Assembly (NCBI GenBank): GCA_002269645.1
Contig: NIVC01001955.1
Location: 68,123-132,122, forward strand
Source: Macrostomum lignano
Taxonomy: Eukaryota
Length of the DNA: 64,000 nt
Reading direction: 5' to 3'
Shown here: in pieces, positions 47,475 through 64,000 of the stretch
Layout: the number at the start of each line of letters is the position of its first letter
Position numbering within the stretch: the first letter of the stretch is position 1
The notes under the pieces: generated by a model
The model's input: only the letters and a program-made list of their open reading frames with translations
What the model was told of the DNA's origin: nothing
The model's database searches: none
Position numbers and translations under genes: made by a program

Positions 47475-49400
47475 TCTACCATGTCGAACATTAAAGAGCC
47501 ACCATGTCAAACATTAAAGAGCCACCATTTCGAACATTAAAGAGCCACCATGTCAAACATTAAAGAGCCACCATTTCGAACATTAAAGAGCCACCATGTC
47601 AAACATTAAAGAGCCACCATTTCGAACATTAAAGAGCCACCATGTCAAACATTAAAGAGCCACCATTTCGAACATTAAAGAGCCACCATGTCAAACATTA
47701 AAGAGCCACCATGTCGAACATTAAAGAGCCACCATTTCGAACATTAAAGAGCCACCATGTCAAACATTAAAGAGCCACCATGTCGAACATTAAAGAGCCA
47801 CCATGTGGAACATTAAAGAGCCACCATGTCGAACATTAAAGAGCCACCATGTCAAACATTAAAGAGCCACCATTTCGAACATTAAAGAGCCACCATGTGG
47901 AACATTAAAGAGCCACCATTTCGAACATTAAAGAGCCACCATGTCAAACATTAAAGAGCCACCATGTCGAACATTAAAGAGCCACCATTTCGAACATTAA
48001 AGAGCCACCATGTCAAACATTAAAGAGCCACCATGTCGAACATTAAAGAGCCACCATGTGGAACATTAAAGAGCCACCATTTCGAACATTAAAGAGCCAC
48101 CATGTCAAACATTAAAGAGCCACCATGTCGAACATTAAAGAGCCACCATTTCGAACATTAAAGAGCCACCATGTCGAACATTAAAGGGCCATCATGTCGA
48201 ACATTAAAGAGCCACCATTTCGAACATTAAAGAGCCACCATGTCGAACATTAAAGAGCCACCATTTCGAACATTAAAGAGCCACCATGTCAAACATTAAA
48301 GAGCCACCATTTCGAACATTAAAGAGCCACCATGTCAAACATTAAAGAGCCACCATGTCGAACATTAAAGAGCCACCATTTCGAACATTAAAGAGCCACC
48401 ATGTCGAACATTAAAGAGCCATCATGTCGAACATTAAAGAGCCACCATTTCGAACATTAAAGAGCCACCATGTCGAACATTAAAGAGCCACCATTTCGAA
48501 CATTAAAGAGCCACCATGTCAAACATTAAAGAGCCACCATGTCAAACATTAAAGAGCCACCATGTCAAAAATTAAAGAGCCACCATGTGGAACATTAAAG
48601 AGCCACCATGTCAAACATTAAAGAGCCACCATTTCGAATATTAAAGAGCCACCATGTGGAACATTAAAGAGCCACCATGTCAAACATTAAAGAGCCACCA
48701 TTTCGAACATTAAAGAGCCACCATGTCAAACATTAAAGAGCCACCATTTCGAACATTAAAGAGCCACCATGTCAAACATTAAAGAGCCACCATTTCGAAC
48801 ATTAAAGAGCTACCATGTGGAACATAGAAGAGCCATCATGTCAAACATTAAAGAGCTACAATGTCAAACATTAAAGAGCCACCATGTGAAACATAAAAGA
48901 GCCACCATGTCAAACATGTACACGACTAGATGTTAAACATTAAAGAGCCACCATGTCAAACATATATGTGACTCCATGTCAAAAATTAAAGAGCCACCAT
49001 GTTGAACATTAAAGAGCCACCATGTCAAACATTAAAGAGCTATTATGTCAAACATACTCATAGAGCTACCAAGTCAGACATAAAAGAGCCACCATGTCAA
49101 AAAATAAAATATCCACCATGTCAAACATATATGTGACTCCATGTCAAACATTAAAGAGTCACTATGTCAAACATTAAAGAGCTACCATGTCAAACATAAA
49201 AGAGCCACCATGTAGAACACAAAAGAGTCACCATGTCAAACATTAAAGAGCCACCATGTCAAACATTAAAGAGCCACCATGTCAAACATTAAAGAGCCAC
49301 CATGTCAAACATTAAAGAGCCACCATGTCAAACATAAAGGAGACATCATTTCAAACATAAAAAGAAGCATCATGCCAAACATAAAGGAGCCACTATAAAG
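47475..49400. repeat. 23-bp minisatellite (GAGCCACCATGTCAAACATTAAA)n, ~1.9 kb
   Basis: Homogeneous on the left, degenerate on the right. Confidence 0.97.
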
Positions 49401-49439
49401 CTAAGGATATTGTTGCACTAGCTACTTGTTGTCTGGTGG

Positions 49440-50115
49440 ATGCTTGCTATCTAAGGATAGATAATTGCTATCAGGGAGATGCTTGCTATCTGAGGGATGT
49501 TTGCTATCTGAGTGATGCTTGCTATTGGGTAAGATGCTTGCTATCTATCTAGGGTAACTTGCTATTGGGGGATGCTTGCTATCTAGGGTAACTTGCTATT
49601 GGGGGGTGCTTGCTCTTGGGGAATGGAGGGTACTTGCTATCTAAGAAGGGTTTGCTAGCTATCTATAAGGATTCTTTGTATCCAGGGATGCTTGCTATCT
49701 AGGGGATGCTTGCATGCTGTCTGGGAATGCTTGCTATCTGGGGGATGCTTGCTATCTAGGAGATGCTTGCATGCTGTCTGGGGATACTTGCTATCTAGGA
49801 GATGCTTTCATGCTGTCTGGGGATGTTTGCATGCTGTCTGGGGATTCTTGCTATCTGGAGGATGCTTGCTATCTAGGGGATGCTTGCTATCTGGGAGACG
49901 CTAGTATACTGTCTGGGGATGCTTGCTATCTGGGGGATGCTTGCTACCTAGGGGATGCTTGCTATCTGGGAGATGCTTGCATACTATCTGGGGATGCTTG
50001 CTATTTGGGAGGCAAGAGGCTTACTCTTGGCAGGAGGGTATTTGCCATATTGGGGGGAGAGGTTTTGCTATCTGGAGAGTGCTTGCTATCTGGGAAGATG
50101 CTTGCTGTCTTGGGA
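49440..50115. repeat. ~18-bp degenerate minisatellite (ATGCTTGCTATCTGGGG)n
   Basis: Visible array. Confidence 0.9.
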
Positions 50116-56303: not shown

Positions 56304-57711
56304 TTAGATCTCCACACCCTCACGTCTGCCGTGTCCTCCACCGCGGTGACGTCTGCCGCGACCTCCACCGCGGTGGCGACGCGAGCGATGCCTGCCTGAA
56401 CGACGCCAGTGGTCGTGGCCGCTCTCAGCGCCGCCCATTGCCTGCTCCATGCTGCCGTCAATCAGGTCCATCATCTGCGCCAGAAAGTCGTCTTCGACGA
56501 GACTCGCCACTTCAACATCTGACTTCATTTCTTTGGCCTCCAGTCCGACGTAGTTCTGCAACAAATTATCAATAGAATCGTAGGTCCTTTCGTAACATTT
56601 ATATACATACGGTAAACTTATGTGCAACTCGCAATACAAACTCAAAAGGAAACGCCTAGCCTTGTTCAGTCTCAGTCAAAAATACTGGATTCTGAAGAAG
56701 CCAGGCCGCAACGTATAAAGTACATTTCATTGGCGCATGGTACGTAACTTCAAGAACCTGAAAGTTTCGAAAATCGATTAGAGAGTGATGAGCCGGTACC
56801 TTGAACTTGCGCCACAGCCTGCGACTTCCTGACGTCTCCTCGGCAGTGCTCGAGTTGTTCTTGCAGAAGTCCGGCACATTGTACAGCTCCCTGTCTTTGA
56901 TGCCCGAGGTCACGTTGTAGTACTGGTAGTTGCCCATCATGCTGCGGAATCGCCTCTTCACTCGGTAAGCGCCCTTAATGGGCACGCACGAGCGGCTGGT
57001 GACAACGGAGAACACCTCGGTGGTCAGCGCGCGGCTGGCGTTGCGGTAGCCGTAGGCCGTCACTGGGAGGCTGTTTTGCCCGGCTCCGTAAAAGTATGGC
57101 GAGTACTGCCTGAAGTAGTCTGTAAGAGTTCGGAATTTTTTACATAGCGGTACTCATCTATGCTCTACTCTGTCAATCAGCCTCATTCTGGCGGATTCTG
57201 GTGGGGATGGATTCTTACCTGGGATGCAGGGTCTTCTCATCGACCGCCTCAGCTTGAATGTCTTGCACTTGTCCTTGTAGATGAAGTACGCCTTCTTGGC
57301 ATTAAAGTCGGCCACGGTTCGGGTGTGGTAGACCCGCTTAGTCTTCTTGCAGTAGGACATTGTGCGGGCGGCCACCTTCTTGCCAGGGTAATCAAGACCG
57401 ACCTTGCTGTCGGACTGCGGGGCAGGCGGAGCGATTCTACGTTAAACTAACACATCAATGAATGAACGGGTACTTCTTTTCCATTTATTGTATTTATAAA
57501 TCTCCAATTTACATTCACTTACGGCTCGAAATTTAGGGATCAGAAATTTCTTGCTAATGTGGAAGGCGCCCACGCGTCCCTCCCACTGTGTGGGCAGACA
57601 GCAGCCTTTGCCGAGCTCGCCCTTGTCGTCGGCGTAGTCGCCCATCCAGAAGAGGCTCTCCATCGCGCTGGCAGTCGCCAGCACAGTCAGGAGAAGCACC
57701 AGAGTCTTCAT
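56304..57711 (-). CDS. Ependymin-related protein, copy A (318 aa), with acidic and Arg/His/Gly-rich tail
   Basis: Exons 57711-57523, 57414-57219, 57119-56800, 56555-56304. Signal peptide MKTLVLLLTVLATASA. Ependymin motifs CCLPTQWEG, C..F.L, PCIP, SCVP, GIKDRELYNVPDFC. Confidence 0.88.
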
Positions 57712-57712
57712 G
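56322..57712 (-). repeat. Left arm of 1391-bp inverted duplication
   Basis: Reverse complement of 59711-61101; no mismatch seen in the segments compared by eye, introns included. Confidence 0.93.
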
Positions 57713-57794
57713 GCTGTTGCTTGGGTTAAACTTGCTTGAATTTATGAGAGCTCAGCTCGTTGAAGTTGGAAGAAGTTCCTATTTGCGTTTCAAG

Positions 57795-57802
57795 TATTTA
57801 TA
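57795..57802 (-). promoter_or_regulatory. TATA box of ependymin copy A
   Basis: TATAAATA on the minus strand, ~91 nt upstream of the ATG. Confidence 0.5.
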
Positions 57803-58507
57803 AAGGGCCATAGGTTGTTGTTGAAGATTCTTATCGCTCCAGGCAAGCCAACTTTGCTACTTTCATAAAGTTGCAGCTGACCTGGAGACGCGGATAAATC
57901 AGATTGAGAGCGAGCCACGCAGAGTTTACGTTTGCATGGCTAATAGCATGTGACTTTTACTGATTATAAGAGAACGTAGAGGGTCAGAATTCGGCGAAAA
58001 TTTATCGAGACAATTTTTAGACGTGGCGCGATACGTGAACTGTAACAGCATGTGTCACTGGCTGCCTGATGAGGTCTGTGTAGTATATGAAAACCTGAGC
58101 TGTCAAGATTGAGAAGTTTTCCAATGACGCATCTGCTGTATCGGCACACGACGTTAGCAACCTCGCTACTTTGATAAAGTAGAAAAGGGTTCAATGTACA
58201 TGAAATTTGCATGCAGCACGATAAGCACTATCAATTTTTTAAAGCGTTTCTAAGTTAAATTTTACTGGGTTTTCCAGCGCTTTAGATTGTTAATTCAATC
58301 CATGACAACATAATGACAAAGTTAATGTCCCTTGGATTTTTAAAGTAAGATGCACTGTTTATAGACAATTTTTTAGCCGATTTGCTACCAAGATTATCCT
58401 CTCTTAAGGCCAATAAGATAGTGTTTTATCTGAAAATGATTTGTATTACATGTAACAAACATGGGTGTCGATACAAAATGCGCCACTCCAAAAAAGTAAG
58501 TCAACCA

Positions 58508-58560
58508 GGGGACTATAGATCCGACGAGAGTCCCTAGGTTCGATTCCTCGCGTGCGGTCC
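58508..58560 (+). other. tRNA-like relic (anticodon arm and B box), D-arm absent
   Basis: GGACTATAGATCC...GGTTCGATTCC (B box 58537-58547) resembles tRNA-Tyr GGACTGTAGATCC...GGTTCGA. No full cloverleaf. Confidence 0.35.
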
Positions 58561-59629
58561 ACAGAATGTGAAATTCGTACAAGGAAATCATTCGTACAAG
58601 GAGGTTGTTAAACGATTCTTGCCCAATGTAGGCCAAGGCAGCTAGCTGAGCATGATGAAAGTAAGGAGGGCTGCATGTCTTGTTTACCCGTCTGAGTTAG
58701 GCGAGGTAATGTAAGCTTTCATTCTCTACTCGCGTCGTGCAGCGATACAATGTATTGATTTCAGCCAAACCAATTAACTGTTCAGGCGCACATTTCGGGC
58801 TGAAAAATCGGCCTGCTATGAAATTTTCGGCTTGCCCAAGTAGCCGTCTGCTAGCTCGTAAATCAACAGTAAAACACTGTAAATGGTGTTAATTAAATGC
58901 AATAAAGCATAATTTATGCTCTCTCAGCTCGAAATACAAGGTCCCAAAAAATTTATTTTCGATACTTTTGGCCCCAAGAAATTGTGCAGTGACAGAGAAA
59001 AATGAATAATAAAAAAGTATGGGTCTCTGCTAGAGACTAAAAAAGTTCTTTTTCAATTCGGATTAATTCATTAGACGTTTGCCATCGAGCCAATCTGCTT
59101 ATAATATGCACCCGAACAGAGACAGCGCTATAACTTCCTTCAAGGCATAATTATCAATTTTTTATCGCACTGAAGTCTGTCAGGCTGAAGTGGAATGAGA
59201 AAGTTATCACAGTCAATACGGACCCCAAATACGTGACACTTTGGTACCTCGTACATAGAAACGCTGTGTGTTTAACTTGAGAATAGAAAATGTAGAAAAT
59301 CTAAAACCTTCCCGAGAAATTAAAGGATTTTTCATGCGTATTAAACATTTGTTTACCGGTATTGAAGACTTCTGAATATGTGCTCGATCTTCGTCCGATA
59401 GACAAAAAATTACCTGGCAAATTGCTTAGCCGCTGGAGACCTCGTAAAAAATTGTAAGAAAGTTATTTTGAATTTGATCTGAAACTGTTTTTCTACGCAC
59501 TAAAAATTCAAGCCGCAGGTTTTAATAAATGTCATGTCATCGAGACCTACGAATACTAAAATTAGAACGGAAAACGCTTTGACAGCGGGTGCAAAGTTTT
59601 GACCTTCGTCTGTCAGATATGCAAAGCAG

Positions 59630-59637
59630 TATAAAAG
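59630..59637 (+). promoter_or_regulatory. TATA box of ependymin copy B
   Basis: TATAAAAG ~82 nt upstream of the ATG at 59712. Confidence 0.5.
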
Positions 59638-59710
59638 ACAGTCATTTGTAGCATAACTTTTCCGACGATAAAAATTGGTCAAGCTAAATTTGCAAAACAG
59701 ACAACAAAAT

Positions 59711-61101
59711 CATGAAGACTCTGGTGCTTCTCCTGACTGTGCTGGCGACTGCCAGCGCGATGGAGAGCCTCTTCTGGATGGGCGACTACGCCGACGACAA
59801 GGGCGAGCTCGGCAAAGGCTGCTGTCTGCCCACACAGTGGGAGGGACGCGTGGGCGCCTTCCACATTAGCAAGAAATTTCTGATCCCTAAATTTCGAGCC
59901 GTAAGTGAATGTAAATTGGAGATTTATAAATACAATAAATGGAAAAGAAGTACCCGTTCATTCATTGATGTGTTAGTTTAACGTAGAATCGCTCCGCCTG
60001 CCCCGCAGTCCGACAGCAAGGTCGGTCTTGATTACCCTGGCAAGAAGGTGGCCGCCCGCACAATGTCCTACTGCAAGAAGACTAAGCGGGTCTACCACAC
60101 CCGAACCGTGGCCGACTTTAATGCCAAGAAGGCGTACTTCATCTACAAGGACAAGTGCAAGACATTCAAGCTGAGGCGGTCGATGAGAAGACCCTGCATC
60201 CCAGGTAAGAATCCATCCCCACCAGAATCCGCCAGAATGAGGCTGATTGACAGAGTAGAGCATAGATGAGTACCGCTATGTAAAAAATTCCGAACTCTTA
60301 CAGACTACTTCAGGCAGTACTCGCCATACTTTTACGGAGCCGGGCAAAACAGCCTCCCAGTGACGGCCTACGGCTACCGCAACGCCAGCCGCGCGCTGAC
60401 CACCGAGGTGTTCTCCGTTGTCACCAGCCGCTCGTGCGTGCCCATTAAGGGCGCTTACCGAGTGAAGAGGCGATTCCGCAGCATGATGGGCAACTACCAG
60501 TACTACAACGTGACCTCGGGCATCAAAGACAGGGAGCTGTACAATGTGCCGGACTTCTGCAAGAACAACTCGAGCACTGCCGAGGAGACGTCAGGAAGTC
60601 GCAGGCTGTGGCGCAAGTTCAAGGTACCGGCTCATCACTCTCTAATCGATTTTCGAAACTTTCAGGTTCTTGAAGTTACGTACCATGCGCCAATGAAATG
60701 TACTTTATACGTTGCGGCCTGGCTTCTTCAGAATCCAGTATTTTTGACTGAGACTGAACAAGGCTAGGCGTTTCCTTTTGAGTTTGTATTGCGAGTTGCA
60801 CATAAGTTTACCGTATGTATATAAATGTTACGAAAGGACCTACGATTCTATTGATAATTTGTTGCAGAACTACGTCGGACTGGAGGCCAAAGAAATGAAG
60901 TCAGATGTTGAAGTGGCGAGTCTCGTCGAAGACGACTTTCTGGCGCAGATGATGGACCTGATTGACGGCAGCATGGAGCAGGCAATGGGCGGCGCTGAGA
61001 GCGGCCACGACCACTGGCGTCGTTCAGGCAGGCATCGCTCGCGTCGCCACCGCGGTGGAGGTCGCGGCAGACGTCACCGCGGTGGAGGACACGGCAGACG
61101 T
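59711..61101 (+). repeat. Right arm of 1391-bp inverted duplication
   Basis: Mirror of 56322-57712 (x maps to 117423-x). Confidence 0.93.
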
Positions 61102-61140
61102 CATCGCGACTCAGAACGCTACGATGAGGTGGAGGCTTGA
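59712..61140 (+). CDS. Ependymin-related protein, copy B (325 aa), with acidic and Arg/His/Gly-rich tail
   Basis: Exons 59712-59900, 60009-60204, 60304-60623, 60868-61140; phase-compatible, 978 nt. Identical to copy A until ...GHGRR, then HRDSERYDEVEA*. Confidence 0.9.
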
Positions 61141-61453: not shown

Positions 61454-62685
61454 TTAAAGAGGCTGTGTCACTAGAGGCATGTCATGGAATGAACTCAGCC
61501 GCAGCCGCACAGCCTCAGAAGCGGCAATATCTGACGGCAGCTCAGCAGCGAAAGCTTCGCAATCGAAGGGTCGCATTAGAAAGTGGGCGAATTCTGCACT
61601 GGCAAGAAAATCAGCCTCGTGACGGCGCTCCGACGAGCAGGCAAACTCGTCCACCGGGTCGCCGCCGCAGCCAGGCTCTCCGGGCAGGCAGGGCTCGCCG
61701 GGGTGCACCATCCACTCGCACCAGAGCTCGGCGGGCTCGTCTGACATGCTCCGCTGAAAGGCAGTTATGGGAAAAAAGAATGCTAAGTGCATGACAGCGT
61801 GTGGCATAATAATAGTTGTGAAGCAGCAAAGTATGTTTGTTGGCTTATATATATTCTTGTCCCTCATTTTCTCGAAGCATCACTTGATATTTATGAGCTT
61901 TCTTCGTGAAGCTTTAGAAAATATTTACTACACACCAGCTTAATCAGCGCTGGGCTCAGCTGCCTGGCCAGCTGCCGGGCCACTCTGTCCAGCCGCATCT
62001 CGGCCCCATGCTGGACAGGCCCATGAAGGCACCGGCCAGGTGAGGCCAGCCGAGGCAAACTCTTGCTTGGCCGCGATAGCCGCGTCGTTTGATACGTCAG
62101 TCAGGAAGCGTCGCCGTTGGCTTTGGGCCTCTCCGTCAGTTTCAACAGTCTTGTTGTTGTCCTCGTCGCCGACATCCAGCCAGGGCAGGCGGCACTCGGC
62201 CGGCACTCGACGCGATGGACACCAGCAGCCGCGGCGGCCTCGGCGAAGGCGGACGCGGCCAGGCCGGGCAGCGAGTGCGCGTGCTGGTGCCCGTCGGCGT
62301 GACCGGCCGGCCGTCCGTCGAAGAGCTCGGCGAATCGGGCAAACTGAGCGCCGGCCTCGGCTAGGATGTCCGACCGGGACACCTGTCCGGCTGAAAGGGC
62401 AGCGCGAAAGCCGAGCTTGCCCAGGAACCGGCCAGTGTCCGGGTTCACCAGGCTCGGCACTGGCCAGGCGGACAAACCGGCCGGCCCTCGTCAGGTTCAG
62501 ATGAAGCCCGGGCGTCGGTCTTGAAGCAAAAAAGCTGCGAAGCTCGGCGGAGCGCAGGCCGAACCGGTGACCATGAAGGAGGCGTCCGTCACGTGACCGT
62601 CGGCCAGGAGCCGCAGGATGGCCCGGTCGCGCCTGGCCGAGTAGCCGAGATCGTCAGCGTTGATAATAAGGTTCAGCAGCAGAGG
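61454..62685 (-). CDS. YDJC: YdjC-family carbohydrate deacetylase with six apparent 1-bp deletions (probably sequencing errors); start exon unresolved
   Basis: Exon 62685-61936: LIINADDLGYSARRD..GLHLNLT(E)GRP..GRFLGKLGFR..HADGHQHAHSLPG..AFMGLS. Exon 61753-61454: EWMVHPGEP..GCGGDPVDEFACSSERRHE. Metal-binding DD and H motifs are present. Confidence 0.85.
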
Positions 62686-62915
62686 CTGCGGGAAGAAGAG
62701 CTTAAATAATTGTTGAAAATTGAAAATTGGTTTGTTTGGCTCAGGTGTTCCTCCATCTCTTGGCCTTAATACAACAAGGATGCAAGATATAGAACATGAT
62801 GTGCGTTCAAATCAAATTTATATTTATCATACGTGGTCTTGTTAATTAACAAGCGTCTGAAATGTTTTTAACGTCTGAGATATTAGAGAAAAGCTCAGTA
62901 AATCTGAGCAGACGT

Positions 62916-62929: not shown

Positions 62930-63487
62930 TCCTACACTGCTAATCCTTCTCAGGTTGAAACTTCAATACAGCAAAACAACCTCAGTACACGGAGGGCAGA
63001 GCATAGGCCATAAATACGCTGCCTGTGGCCAGCCAGAGATAAGAAGCTTCAGAACACTCCTGACCAAACTAACAGAGACTTTCGAAAATACAAAAAACAA
63101 TCTGAAAATTCTGAGATCGAAATTGGCTGGCTAAACAGCTAAACGTTGATAAGCGGAATCGAAAAGCTTTGATCGAGCAAGTTAGAGGCCGGTTTAAAAA
63201 GATTTAGCGAGCTATCTCTGCATGCAGTCCAGTCTTAGAAGACGCAGCTGCTATCTCTCTGCTCAAGCCAGTGGACTCATACAGGAATCTTACAATTGTT
63301 AACTGGATTTACCTTAAGTAAATTACTTATTTTAAGTAAATGTGAAACCATAATGGAGCTACAAGTCTTTATAGGCTAGCCCGAGGGGCATACGAAAGCA
63401 CCATAAATGAGTGTGAAGATGTCACTTAGTCTCATGTTTCTTTCTTATTTTGTGTCGTGCAGCATATAAAATGTATTCAAATCTATT

Positions 63488-63488
<1 letters not shown>

Positions 63489-63554
<66 letters not shown>

Positions 63555-63598
63555 TCTCTTTCTTTCTCTCTCTCTCGCTTTCTCTTTCTCTCTCTTTT

Positions 63599-63652
<54 letters not shown>

Positions 63653-63815
63653 CTCTTCTCTCTCTTCTCTCTCTCGTCTCTCTCTCTCTCTCTCTCTCTC
63701 TCTTTTCTCTCTCTCTCTCTCTCTCTCTTTTCTCTCTCTCTCCTCTCTCTCTTCTTCTCTCTCTGTCTCTCTTCTCTCTCTCTCTCTCTCTCTCTCCTCT
63801 CTTTCTCTCTCTCTC
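63489..63815. repeat. (CT)n microsatellite and low-complexity sequence
   Basis: Directly visible. Confidence 0.96.
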
Positions 63816-64000
63816 TAATCAGCGAGAGAGAGACTAATCAGCTAAACCTTGAGATTGGCGGGCGACCGTTCGTTGGAAATGCCAACAGGCAAGTCAAGCA
63901 ACCCCCCCCCCCCGAGTGAAAATCAAGCGCTAACTTCCTACCGCCAACGTTGAGGAAAATTTCTGCGCTGAGCCGCAGCTTTCCGCTCCATCTCCGGCAG

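Follow-up and report, generated by a model that had tools for sequence, protein, structure and literature searches.

How can two neighbouring genes be identical to the base through exons and introns, and at the same time begin at different promoters and end in different tails? The question is raised by two head-to-head ependymin-related genes in a stretch of 64 kb (the window), which coincides exactly with the end of contig NIVC01001955.1 in Mlig_3_7, an assembly of the Macrostomum lignano genome. In the initial annotation, it had been proposed that older paralogs were homogenised by gene conversion between the arms of an inverted repeat. The comparison of four loci suggests, with a probability of about 0.8, that the pair evolves in concert through gene conversion running both ways between the arms, and that the structure is real and older than the divergence of the subgenome copies.

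A mirror-image pair of ependymin-like genes

With GT-AG splicing, each copy has four exons, and the reading frames are 318 aa (left gene) and 325 aa (right gene) long; both products exactly match annotated M. lignano proteins (Table 1). The assignment of the pair to the ependymin family was confirmed. The Pfam model PF00811 (ependymin) matched residues 92-214 with 56.9 bits, above its curated threshold of 32.3 (E=3e-15), along 124 of its 128 positions, and PDB chains of the mammalian ependymin-related protein 1 (EPDR1) matched residues 36-216 (E=1e-4 to 2e-3), a segment that contains the C-x-x-P-x-QWEGR motif. By inspection only, the hydrophobic N-terminal leader MKTLVLLLTVLATASA is signal-like, and the protein has seven cysteines and the sequons NAS, NVT and NNS. 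Both copies are predicted to be secreted ependymin-like proteins. The ependymin domain is common to the flatworm protein and EPDR1 (PDB 6jl9, 6e7o) or PF00811, with low sequence identity to EPDR1. Unlike these, the flatworm protein carries an extra C-terminal exon of ~90 residues with an acidic stretch and 9-residue repeats of Arg, His and Gly, to which no Pfam model matched. No more ependymin copies were found by tblastn in the window, and a literature search for these locus names or for ependymin in Macrostomum returned nothing.

Table 1. Features of the ependymin-related gene pair (positions in the window).
Feature	Position	Strand	Details
Left ependymin-related gene	56304..57711	-	exons 57523-57711, 57219-57414, 56800-57119, 56304-56555; 318 aa; identical to P0005 (PAA46891.1)
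Right ependymin-related gene	59712..61140	+	exons 59712-59900, 60009-60204, 60304-60623, 60868-61140; 325 aa; identical to P0006 (PAA46890.1)
Left copy-specific tail	56304..56321	-	EGVEI, then stop
Right copy-specific tail	61102..61140	+	HRDSERYDEVEA, then stop
Left arm	56322..57712	-	318-aa gene from ATG-1 to codon 313, with introns; reverse-complementary to 59711-61101
Right arm	59711..61101	+	325-aa gene from ATG-1 to codon 313, with introns
Unique spacer	57713..59710	.	1998 nt; carries both divergent 5' regions; same orientation in all four loci
27-nt tandem repeat	61048..61108	+	TRF: period 27, 2.3 copies; encodes RRHRGGG[R/H]G
Left TATA box TATAAATA	57795..57802	-	91 nt upstream of left ATG; kept in L002, L003 (at -88) and L004
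Right TATA box TATAAAAG	59630..59637	+	82 nt upstream of right ATG; kept in L002, L003 and L004
Putative conversion patch	56343..56740	-	left (318) arm, arm positions 973-1370; 9 of 11 differences from L004 in 4.5 kb

Exact alignment of the arms revealed an inverted repeat of 1391 nt with 100% complementarity and 1998 nt between the arms, which is the sole large inverted repeat within the 64 kb. The mirror copies, in which no mismatch had been seen by eye, were thus verified. Their limits also proved to be as first described, as judged from alignment, splicing and TRF. Identity begins one base 5' of each ATG (left 57711-57709 on the minus strand, right 59712-59714), all three introns of each copy lie inside the arms, and the right arm stops at 61101, the exact end of unit 2 of the 27-nt repeat. 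Two full units are mirrored in the left copy (56322-56375), and the repeat also yields the inverted pairs I2 and I3, offset by 27 nt. Directly beyond both arm ends, base matching was at chance level.

The separate TATA boxes described for the two genes are both present in the spacer, of which a second copy was not found elsewhere in the window. A B-box-like motif (GGTTCGATTCC) near 58540 prompted a search for a tRNA or SINE in the spacer; this candidate was rejected, with none found by ARAGORN and no Rfam match at E<=0.1.

The same pair on four contigs

The head-to-head pair was also found on contigs NIVC01004661.1 (L002), NIVC01002675.1 (L003) and NIVC01002189.1 (L004). Each locus consists of a 325-aa gene and a 318- or 313-aa gene around a spacer of ~2 kb that is collinear across L001-L004; a flip of the spacer, as expected from crossing-over between the arms, was not seen among the four. 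In every locus, the homology block begins at ATG-1. Its other end is at arm position 1391, except in L003, where it lies near 1364 (~27 nt earlier). Flanks are conserved between loci for the same gene type and unrelated between gene types, and the unique flanks differ between loci by up to several percent. The arms of one locus differ from each other by 0 sites in the window, by 4 substitutions and 2 indels in L002, by 23 substitutions and a 15-nt deletion in L003, and by 25 substitutions in L004. Since the pair is present in four loci with shared boundaries as well as diverged arms and flanks, the duplication is, judged from these alignments, not recent but older than the split of the subgenome copies.

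These observations bear on two simpler explanations. Perfect arm identity, sharp ends and the lack of detectable flank homology would all fit a very recent inverted duplication, raised as an alternative in the initial annotation, whose arms had no time to diverge. However, the pair is shared by all four loci with these common boundaries, some of them with flanks several percent diverged from the window and arms that differ by 23-25 substitutions, and four independent identical duplications are not credible. The alternative is refuted by the occurrence of the pair on contigs with diverged unique flanks, and we regard it as highly improbable. There is almost no chance that the whole palindrome was produced during assembly, be it by a read that is chimeric or folded back or by the mis-joining of haplotypes. 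False inverted duplications do occur in draft long-read assemblies, and the locus lies 3-8 kb from the contig end beside a CT microsatellite. Fold-back artefacts, however, are palindromes that lack a spacer and remain homologous up to the joint, whereas in this pair a unique spacer of 2 kb separates the arms, the flanks are unique and different, the two C-termini are intact and differ, and each type has its own TATA-bearing promoter, conserved across loci. Moreover, the architecture is repeated on four contigs, and the proteins of the earlier ML2 assembly include both protein types.

The proximal TATA-bearing promoter of each gene type is conserved across loci. Because a distinct promoter of this kind accompanies each type in all loci, two regulatory regimes for the pair are plausible, and both copies are presumably expressed. 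Exact-protein look-ups of P0001, P0005, P0006 and P0012 in Logan and NCBI for independent read or transcript support gave Mlig_3_7 contigs only, or nothing. Two Logan transcripts (L005 and L006), from other species, were found with 73% and 53% identity.

Site patterns and probable conversion between the arms

The distribution of variants over the arms was analyzed by partitioning 52 two-state variable arm sites among the six arms of the window, L003 and L004. Fixed differences between the 318 and 325 gene types were absent (0 of 52). Derived states present in both arms of one locus occurred at five sites in L003 only, at three in the window locus only and at one in L004. At nine sites between arm positions 260 and 817, both window arms (318 and 325) and the 318 arm of L004 stood against the 325 arms of L004 and L003 and the 313 arm of L003, i.e., the arms were split independently of gene type. 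Gene type was followed by only three sites, which lie near the arm ends (13, 1036 and 1370).

Differences within a locus were compared with those between loci for the same gene type. They amounted to 0 vs. 9-30 for the window, 4 vs. 5-30 for L002 and 23 vs. 25-30 for L003, and only in L004 did the arms of one locus not prove more alike (25 vs. 9-29). Conversion is episodic rather than constant, because the arms of L004, without any excess of mutual similarity, differ about as much as arms do between loci. On the 318 side, the window and L004 showed 11 mismatches in 4.5 kb, nine of which fell within a 398-nt stretch inside the arm (Table 1); none of 200,000 random placements in a scan-statistic permutation was as tight. 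The arms of the window and L002 differed by four substitutions, all located at sites where the two arms of L002 differ from each other. Since its differences from L002 fall only at these sites, the window represents the homogenised version.

These patterns are what would be expected if the shared block (1391 nt in three loci) has been homogenised repeatedly by non-reciprocal recombination, i.e., gene conversion, between the inverted arms, a break in one arm probably being repaired with the other arm as template. The spacer promoters, the C-terminal tails and the 3' UTRs would be beyond the reach of conversion, since they lie outside the homology. In the window locus, conversion would have gone to completion, leaving zero differences. 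We infer that the 318 gene was the donor over the 5' and central part, and that the 325 gene was the donor over the 3' part.

All four loci derive from one draft assembly, Mlig_3_7, which was built with Canu at an errorRate of 0.04 and polished by Pilon with multi-mapping short genomic reads (Illumina, mapped with Bowtie2) and RNA-seq reads (mapped with STAR) (PMC5730564). The three subgenomes of M. lignano are only ~2.2% apart, most four-copy blocks were judged to be really three-copy, and 93% of read pairs are reported to map to more than one locus (PMC10733133). Due to multi-mapping polishing and the closeness of the subgenomes, a few variants could have been introduced or removed where the consensus mixed near-identical arms. 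The structure might then be real and the perfect arm identity partly an effect of assembly or polishing, with a few true differences, as kept in L002, overwritten. We consider this unlikely. It would agree with the restriction of the differences between window and L002 to the four sites mentioned, with the possibility that the two contigs are one locus assembled twice, given that four-copy blocks are mostly three-copy, and with the 325-type protein P0001 of ML2, an assembly of the same PacBio data, which combines L70 with F130, a combination absent from Mlig_3_7. By contrast, arm site 13 lies only 13 nt from the leader, whose unique sequence anchors the majority of short reads over this site, and RNA-seq polishing offers no explanation for the erased site, one of four, that lies in an intron. 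PacBio consensus errors are, moreover, chiefly indels rather than substitutions (L002 has 42 gap openings vs. 6 mismatches in 10 kb). The conversion signal across loci is left untouched. Collapse during assembly or polishing may apply to the last four sites, but it cannot explain the overall pattern.

Origin of the pair and comparison with known systems

The 5' and 3' flanks of the two copies were aligned locally over 40-999 nt (Smith-Waterman) and, for leaders of 35-95 nt, globally with the ATG as anchor; 500-2000 dinucleotide shuffles served as controls for each comparison. The residual similarity that had been reported outside the arms, in leaders and tails, did not withstand these controls (p=0.07-0.98), and with it fell the argument for older paralogs drawn from leader homology, TATA spacing and tails. 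Flank homology between the copies was not significant in any of these alignments, the best value being p=0.066 for 50-nt leaders, with low power for stretches below ~40 nt. The left and right tails were unrelated by alignment against shuffles, and both leaders, compared with the 5' UTRs of the congener transcripts L005 and L006, gave p=0.10-0.74. The initial annotation had held that absent flank homology would favour simple duplication; the conversion model is retained nevertheless, because of the data across loci. Arm-to-arm homogenisation of copies that each keep their own promoter and C-terminus was thus upheld by the four-locus comparison, whereas the reasoning from residual flank homology behind it was not.

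The copy may have arisen as a partial duplicate, spanning only ATG-1 to codon 313, that acquired a new promoter and a short tail, or the pair may be an old full duplicate with flanks diverged beyond recognition. The partial duplicate is given somewhat less than an even chance. In keeping with it, flank homology is not significant, the 318 tail consists of five codons and a stop, as in read-through into new sequence, and the 325 tail carries the 27-nt repeat on for another 7 nt. However, a random breakpoint precisely one base before the ATG is improbable, and conversion tracts that erode inward until they meet the selected coding sequence would be expected to come to rest at just this position. 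Three further likenesses speak against a partial duplicate: a TATA box at a similar distance in both copies, the leader end AACAGCC-ATG of the 318 type, which is also present in the distant congener transcript L006, and the tail of the 313 type, which resembles that of congener transcript L005 (11 of 15 nt by eye). No argument in this group, the breakpoint included, is statistically secure.

Comparable pairs are known from other animals. The palindromic pairs Hsp70Aa/Hsp70Ab and Amy-p/Amy-d of Drosophila are likewise tightly linked mirror-image genes older than the lineages compared (PMC3924832). Paralogs within a lineage are more alike there than orthologs and have polymorphisms in common, as the account in PMC3924832, citing Bettencourt and Feder 2002, has it, and in Amy only the coding block is homogenised, between flanks that differ (PMC3924832). 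The M. lignano pair differs in that subgenome copies within one neopolyploid genome are compared rather than species, that three introns are homogenised as well, and that the copies end in different C-terminal tails. In Caenorhabditis elegans, the modules or ORFs plus intron of the hsp16-1/hsp16-48 inverted repeat and of col-12/col-13 are 100% or 99.5% identical and the flanks fully diverged, which was read as gene conversion rather than recent duplication, the head-to-head orientation being permitted (PMC3966223). That inference came mainly from the contrast between flanks and ORFs, whereas M. lignano offers four replicate loci with direct site patterns and stages of 0, 4, 23 and 25 differences.

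Palindromes of the mammalian Y and X have arms that surround a unique spacer and are >99% identical through intrachromosomal conversion, which has been proposed to protect genes lacking ordinary recombination (PMC3403216, PMC8600007, PMC8981503). Their arms measure 10 kb to over 1 Mb and include whole genes with promoters, whereas the M. lignano arm of 1.4 kb covers the coding block only, with the promoters in the spacer. Beside these palindromes, a GC bias is not visible in M. lignano, in manual counts too small to judge (3 vs. 3 weak-to-strong among the nine central two-state sites; G or C fixed at three of the four window sites that lost their difference). The C. elegans genes fog-2/ftr-1 arose by partial duplication with a novel C-terminus recruited from neighbouring sequence, plus conversion (PMC3966223). 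Here, too, homology spans most of the gene including introns and stops inside the last exon; however, fog-2/ftr-1 are tandem, with ~170 bp of upstream homology and ~28% synonymous divergence, whereas the M. lignano pair is inverted, starts at ATG-1 and is 0-1.8% diverged.

The pair might also be a selected arrangement, in which an ependymin-like core kept uniform by conversion is combined with two promoters and two alternative C-terminal ends, and the small palindrome might in addition serve as a self-repair template on the large chromosome copies, for which genetic isolation has been suggested. We consider such a reading quite improbable. Locus L004 carries a nonsense allele; if the arrangement were selected and self-repairing, this allele would be a lesion awaiting correction.

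For the understanding of gene conversion itself, the pair is a clear but ordinary example of a well-known process and leaves existing knowledge unchanged. For work on M. lignano, it means that reads, probes, RNAi and guide RNAs placed inside the 1.4-kb block cannot distinguish the two genes. Copy-specific sequence is confined to the leaders, tails and UTRs, and several subgenome copies carry each gene. Within a single genome, the four versions of this small palindrome form a natural series of homogenisation stages, with conversion both ways and with tract ends that come to lie at the ATG and within a repeat of low complexity.

Architecture and products of the gene pair

The two genes of the pair lie head to head on arms that are exact reverse complements over 1391 nt, with 1998 nt between them. 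Arm identity begins one base 5' of each ATG, includes the introns, which are canonical (GT-AG) in both copies, and stops past codon 313, where the second unit of a 27-nt repeat is complete. Directly beyond both arm ends, position-by-position matching is at chance level, and the tails past the shared block read EGVEI-stop in the left gene versus HRDSERYDEVEA-stop in the right gene. Thus, the mirror arms, introns and tails had been described accurately in the initial annotation. The 64-kb window contained no further inverted repeat longer than about 150 nt, the other inverted pairs being microsatellite matches.

The gene product is ependymin-related (Pfam PF00811, 56.9 bits; cut-off 32.3), and EPDR1 crystal-structure sequences match its residues 36-216. 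The roughly 90 residues of the last exon had no match among Pfam models. At 100% identity, the window corresponds to the final part of NIVC01001955.1 (Mlig_3_7, GCA_002269645.1), and its two proteins are exact matches of the annotated M. lignano proteins PAA46891.1 (P0005) and PAA46890.1 (P0006). In UniRef, the ependymin-like proteins P0001, P0004, P0012 and P0013 of the ML2 assembly carry the apparently mistaken names 'Protein virilizer' and 'PIPK domain-containing protein'; the P0004 model is a garbled, frame-shifted version of the same gene. Single transcripts without introns from other species, L005 (SRR28338165) and L006 (SRR13614416), encode ependymin-like proteins 73% and 53% identical, respectively, which also have the extra C-terminal exon, with a basic stretch without the 27-nt repeat. 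Since their 5' UTRs (at least 44-54 nt) have no leader in common, these mRNAs do not look trans-spliced.

Comparison of four loci

M. lignano is a recent hidden polyploid: the DV1 line carries three subgenome copies that differ by about 2.2% in SNPs (PMC10733133). Its assembly is redundant (PMC10733133, PMC5730564). The same head-to-head pair is present on three further Mlig_3_7 contigs: NIVC01004661.1 (L002), NIVC01002675.1 (L003) and NIVC01002189.1 (L004). The two gene types are named 318 and 325 after protein length, the 313-aa copy of L003 counting as 318 type. Since collinearity with the window extends across the spacer in all three further loci, no spacer inversion by crossing-over between the arms was found among the four loci.

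The eight genes were aligned together with their flanks (700 nt upstream, 500 nt downstream). Homology between the types begins at the same base, ATG-1, in all four loci and ends at arm position 1391 in three of them; in L003 it ends about 27 nt earlier because the 313-aa copy lost 15 nt of the repeat. The flanks are conserved within each gene type across loci and unrelated between types. Each type has its own TATA-bearing promoter, conserved in all loci, with TATAAAAG at -82 (325 type) and TATAAATA at -91 or -88 (318/313 type). A palindrome fabricated in assembly is excluded by these promoters, the unique spacer and flanks, the two intact and dissimilar C-terminal tails, the same architecture on four contigs and the occurrence of both protein types in the earlier ML2 assembly. 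A very recent inverted duplication, which had been offered as another explanation of the identical arms, is likewise excluded, since the pair is present in four loci and the structure is older than their divergence.

The arms of the window do not differ from each other (0 differences), while those of L002 differ by 4 substitutions and 2 single-base indels, those of L003 by 23 substitutions and a 15-nt deletion, and those of L004 by 25 substitutions. In the 325-type gene of L004, GGA is changed to TGA at codon 299 (arm position 1347), giving an annotated 298-aa product (P0009) without the last 27 residues. Codon 299 is GGA in the partner arm and in all other loci; the TGA has remained uncorrected.

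Several features were observed around the pair. L002 and L004 carry the 23-nt satellite at the equivalent position as well. Of the four contigs of the locus, three (NIVC01001955, NIVC01004661 and NIVC01002189) terminate no more than a few kb from a long imperfect CT microsatellite, which therefore probably breaks the assembly. A YdjC-like gene convergent with the 325-aa gene is called in L002; in the window's contig, the identical stretch shows its ORF pieces but has no such gene among those called. A block of about 3.5 kb, comprising half of the spacer, the 325 gene and 0.9 kb downstream, is 2-4% diverged between the window and L004; on either side of it the two contigs are identical (more than 2 kb to the left, about 1.2 kb to the right). 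This block is a local haplotype patch, produced by homeologous exchange or by an assembly mosaic.

Coordinates of the gene pair and neighbouring features (window positions unless another locus is named)
Feature	Position	Strand	Remarks
Left arm	56322-57712		carries 318-aa gene
Right arm	59711-61101		carries 325-aa gene
Left gene, CDS	57523-57711, 57219-57414, 56800-57119, 56304-56555	-	4 exons; 318 aa
Right gene, CDS	59712-59900, 60009-60204, 60304-60623, 60868-61140	+	4 exons; 325 aa
27-nt repeat	61048-61108		encodes RRHRGGG(R/H)G; TRF
L004 325-type gene	L004:2771-4161	-	nonsense codon, window equivalent 61057
Mismatch cluster versus L004	56343-56740		398 nt, arm 3' end
Diverged block versus L004	58500-62000		about 3.5 kb
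23-nt satellite	47478-49393		83 copies of ACCATGTCGAACATTAAAGAGCC, 88% matches
18/39/57-nt arrays	49439-50000		after the satellite
YdjC-like gene	61454-62723	-	PF04794
YdjC-like ORF pieces	61454-61867, 62101-62475		
YdjC-like gene in L002	L002:5031-6267		
CT microsatellite	63450-63816		
Insertion in L003	L003:1755-4794		about 3 kb, 318-gene side, versus window ~54719 and other loci

Site patterns and probable arm-to-arm gene conversion

Across six arms, 52 variable sites with two states were compared; their patterns contradict descent by gene type. None of the 52 sites separated all 318-type from all 325-type arms, and gene type was followed at only three sites, near the arm ends (13, 1036 and 1370). 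Derived states were shared by both arms of one locus only: at five sites in L003 (127, 406, 409, 945 and 1206), at three in the window locus (1139, 1229 and 1286) and at one in L004. In the interval of arm positions 260-817, nine sites set both window arms and the 318-type arm of L004 against the 325-type arms of L004 and L003 and the 313 arm of L003. In the simplest reading, L004 would represent the less-converted state. In the lineage of the window and L002, the 325 gene would then have had its central block overwritten by the 318 gene, and in L003 that of the 318-type gene would have been overwritten by the 325 gene. Conversion tracts starting inside the shared block would least often reach the three sites near the arm ends.

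On the 318 side, the window and L004 differ by 11 mismatches in 4.5 kb, nine of them clustered at the 3' end of the arm, with near-identity outside it; 0 of 200,000 random placements were as tight. Between L002 and the window, 6 mismatches and 42 gaps, mostly in homopolymers, were found in 10 kb, and within the arms L002 departs from the window only at positions 13, 973, 1229 and 1230. There, the L002 arms are unlike each other and the window has a single state on both arms, namely the 318 state at 13 and the 325 state at the other three. Therefore, the window is the fully homogenised version, with tracts in both directions. Arm-to-arm gene conversion fits all the patterns, and its earlier proposal was largely right, although the support comes from cross-locus site patterns and not from the grounds first given.

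It is unlikely that assembly inflated the perfect identity of the window arms. All four loci come from one draft assembly (Canu errorRate 0.04; Pilon polishing with short genomic and RNA-seq reads). For 93% of read pairs, the M. lignano genome offers more than one mapping locus, and the majority of its four-copy blocks are considered three-copy (PMC10733133). Hence, L002 and the window contig may represent a single locus that was assembled twice, and the last four differences may have been lost technically. Moreover, the same PacBio reads yielded, in ML2, a predicted 325-type protein (P0001) with L70 and F130, a discordant mosaic of two arm haplotypes that is absent from Mlig_3_7. However, unique sequence begins just 13 nt from site 13, an intron holds one of the four sites, and the errors in L002 are indels, not substitutions. 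The cross-locus signal is much harder to obtain as an artefact, since its variants lie close enough to unique flanks for one long read to link them.

Boundaries, origin and known systems

Residual similarity of leaders and tails, from which older paralogs had partly been argued, did not withstand formal testing against shuffles: local alignment of flanks of 40-999 nt gave p = 0.21-0.98, and ATG-anchored alignment of the leaders gave p = 0.066 at best. The pair may have arisen long ago as a complete duplication, its flanks eroding since, or as a partial copy that acquired a promoter and a tail of five codons, as in C. elegans fog-2/ftr-1. The hints are weak and point in both directions: AACAGCC-ATG closes the 318 leader and also that of a distant congener transcript, the 313 tail is similar to the tail of another congener, and the 325 tail carries the 27-nt repeat onward. 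A boundary exactly at the ATG would be expected if tract ends erode inward to the selected coding sequence, and the slippage-prone repeat is a natural terminator for the boundary inside it.

The homogenisation of mirror-image gene pairs by conversion is a classic phenomenon with known cases. In Drosophila Hsp70Aa/Ab and Amy-p/Amy-d, homogenisation can be confined to the coding block (PMC3924832); in the inverted hsp16 modules and col-12/col-13 of C. elegans, introns are included and the flanks are fully diverged (PMC3966223). Sex-chromosome palindromes of mammals are a larger-scale parallel (PMC3403216, PMC8600007, PMC8981503). The M. lignano locus shows those of the defining features that are open to test. 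Particular to it are an arm whose extent matches the coding block exactly and a spacer that contains both promoters, the unlike C-termini of the two copies, four replicate loci at different stages in one genome and the uncorrected nonsense codon in one replicate. While no surprise to the specialist, the locus is of use for the annotation of M. lignano and as a clean example.
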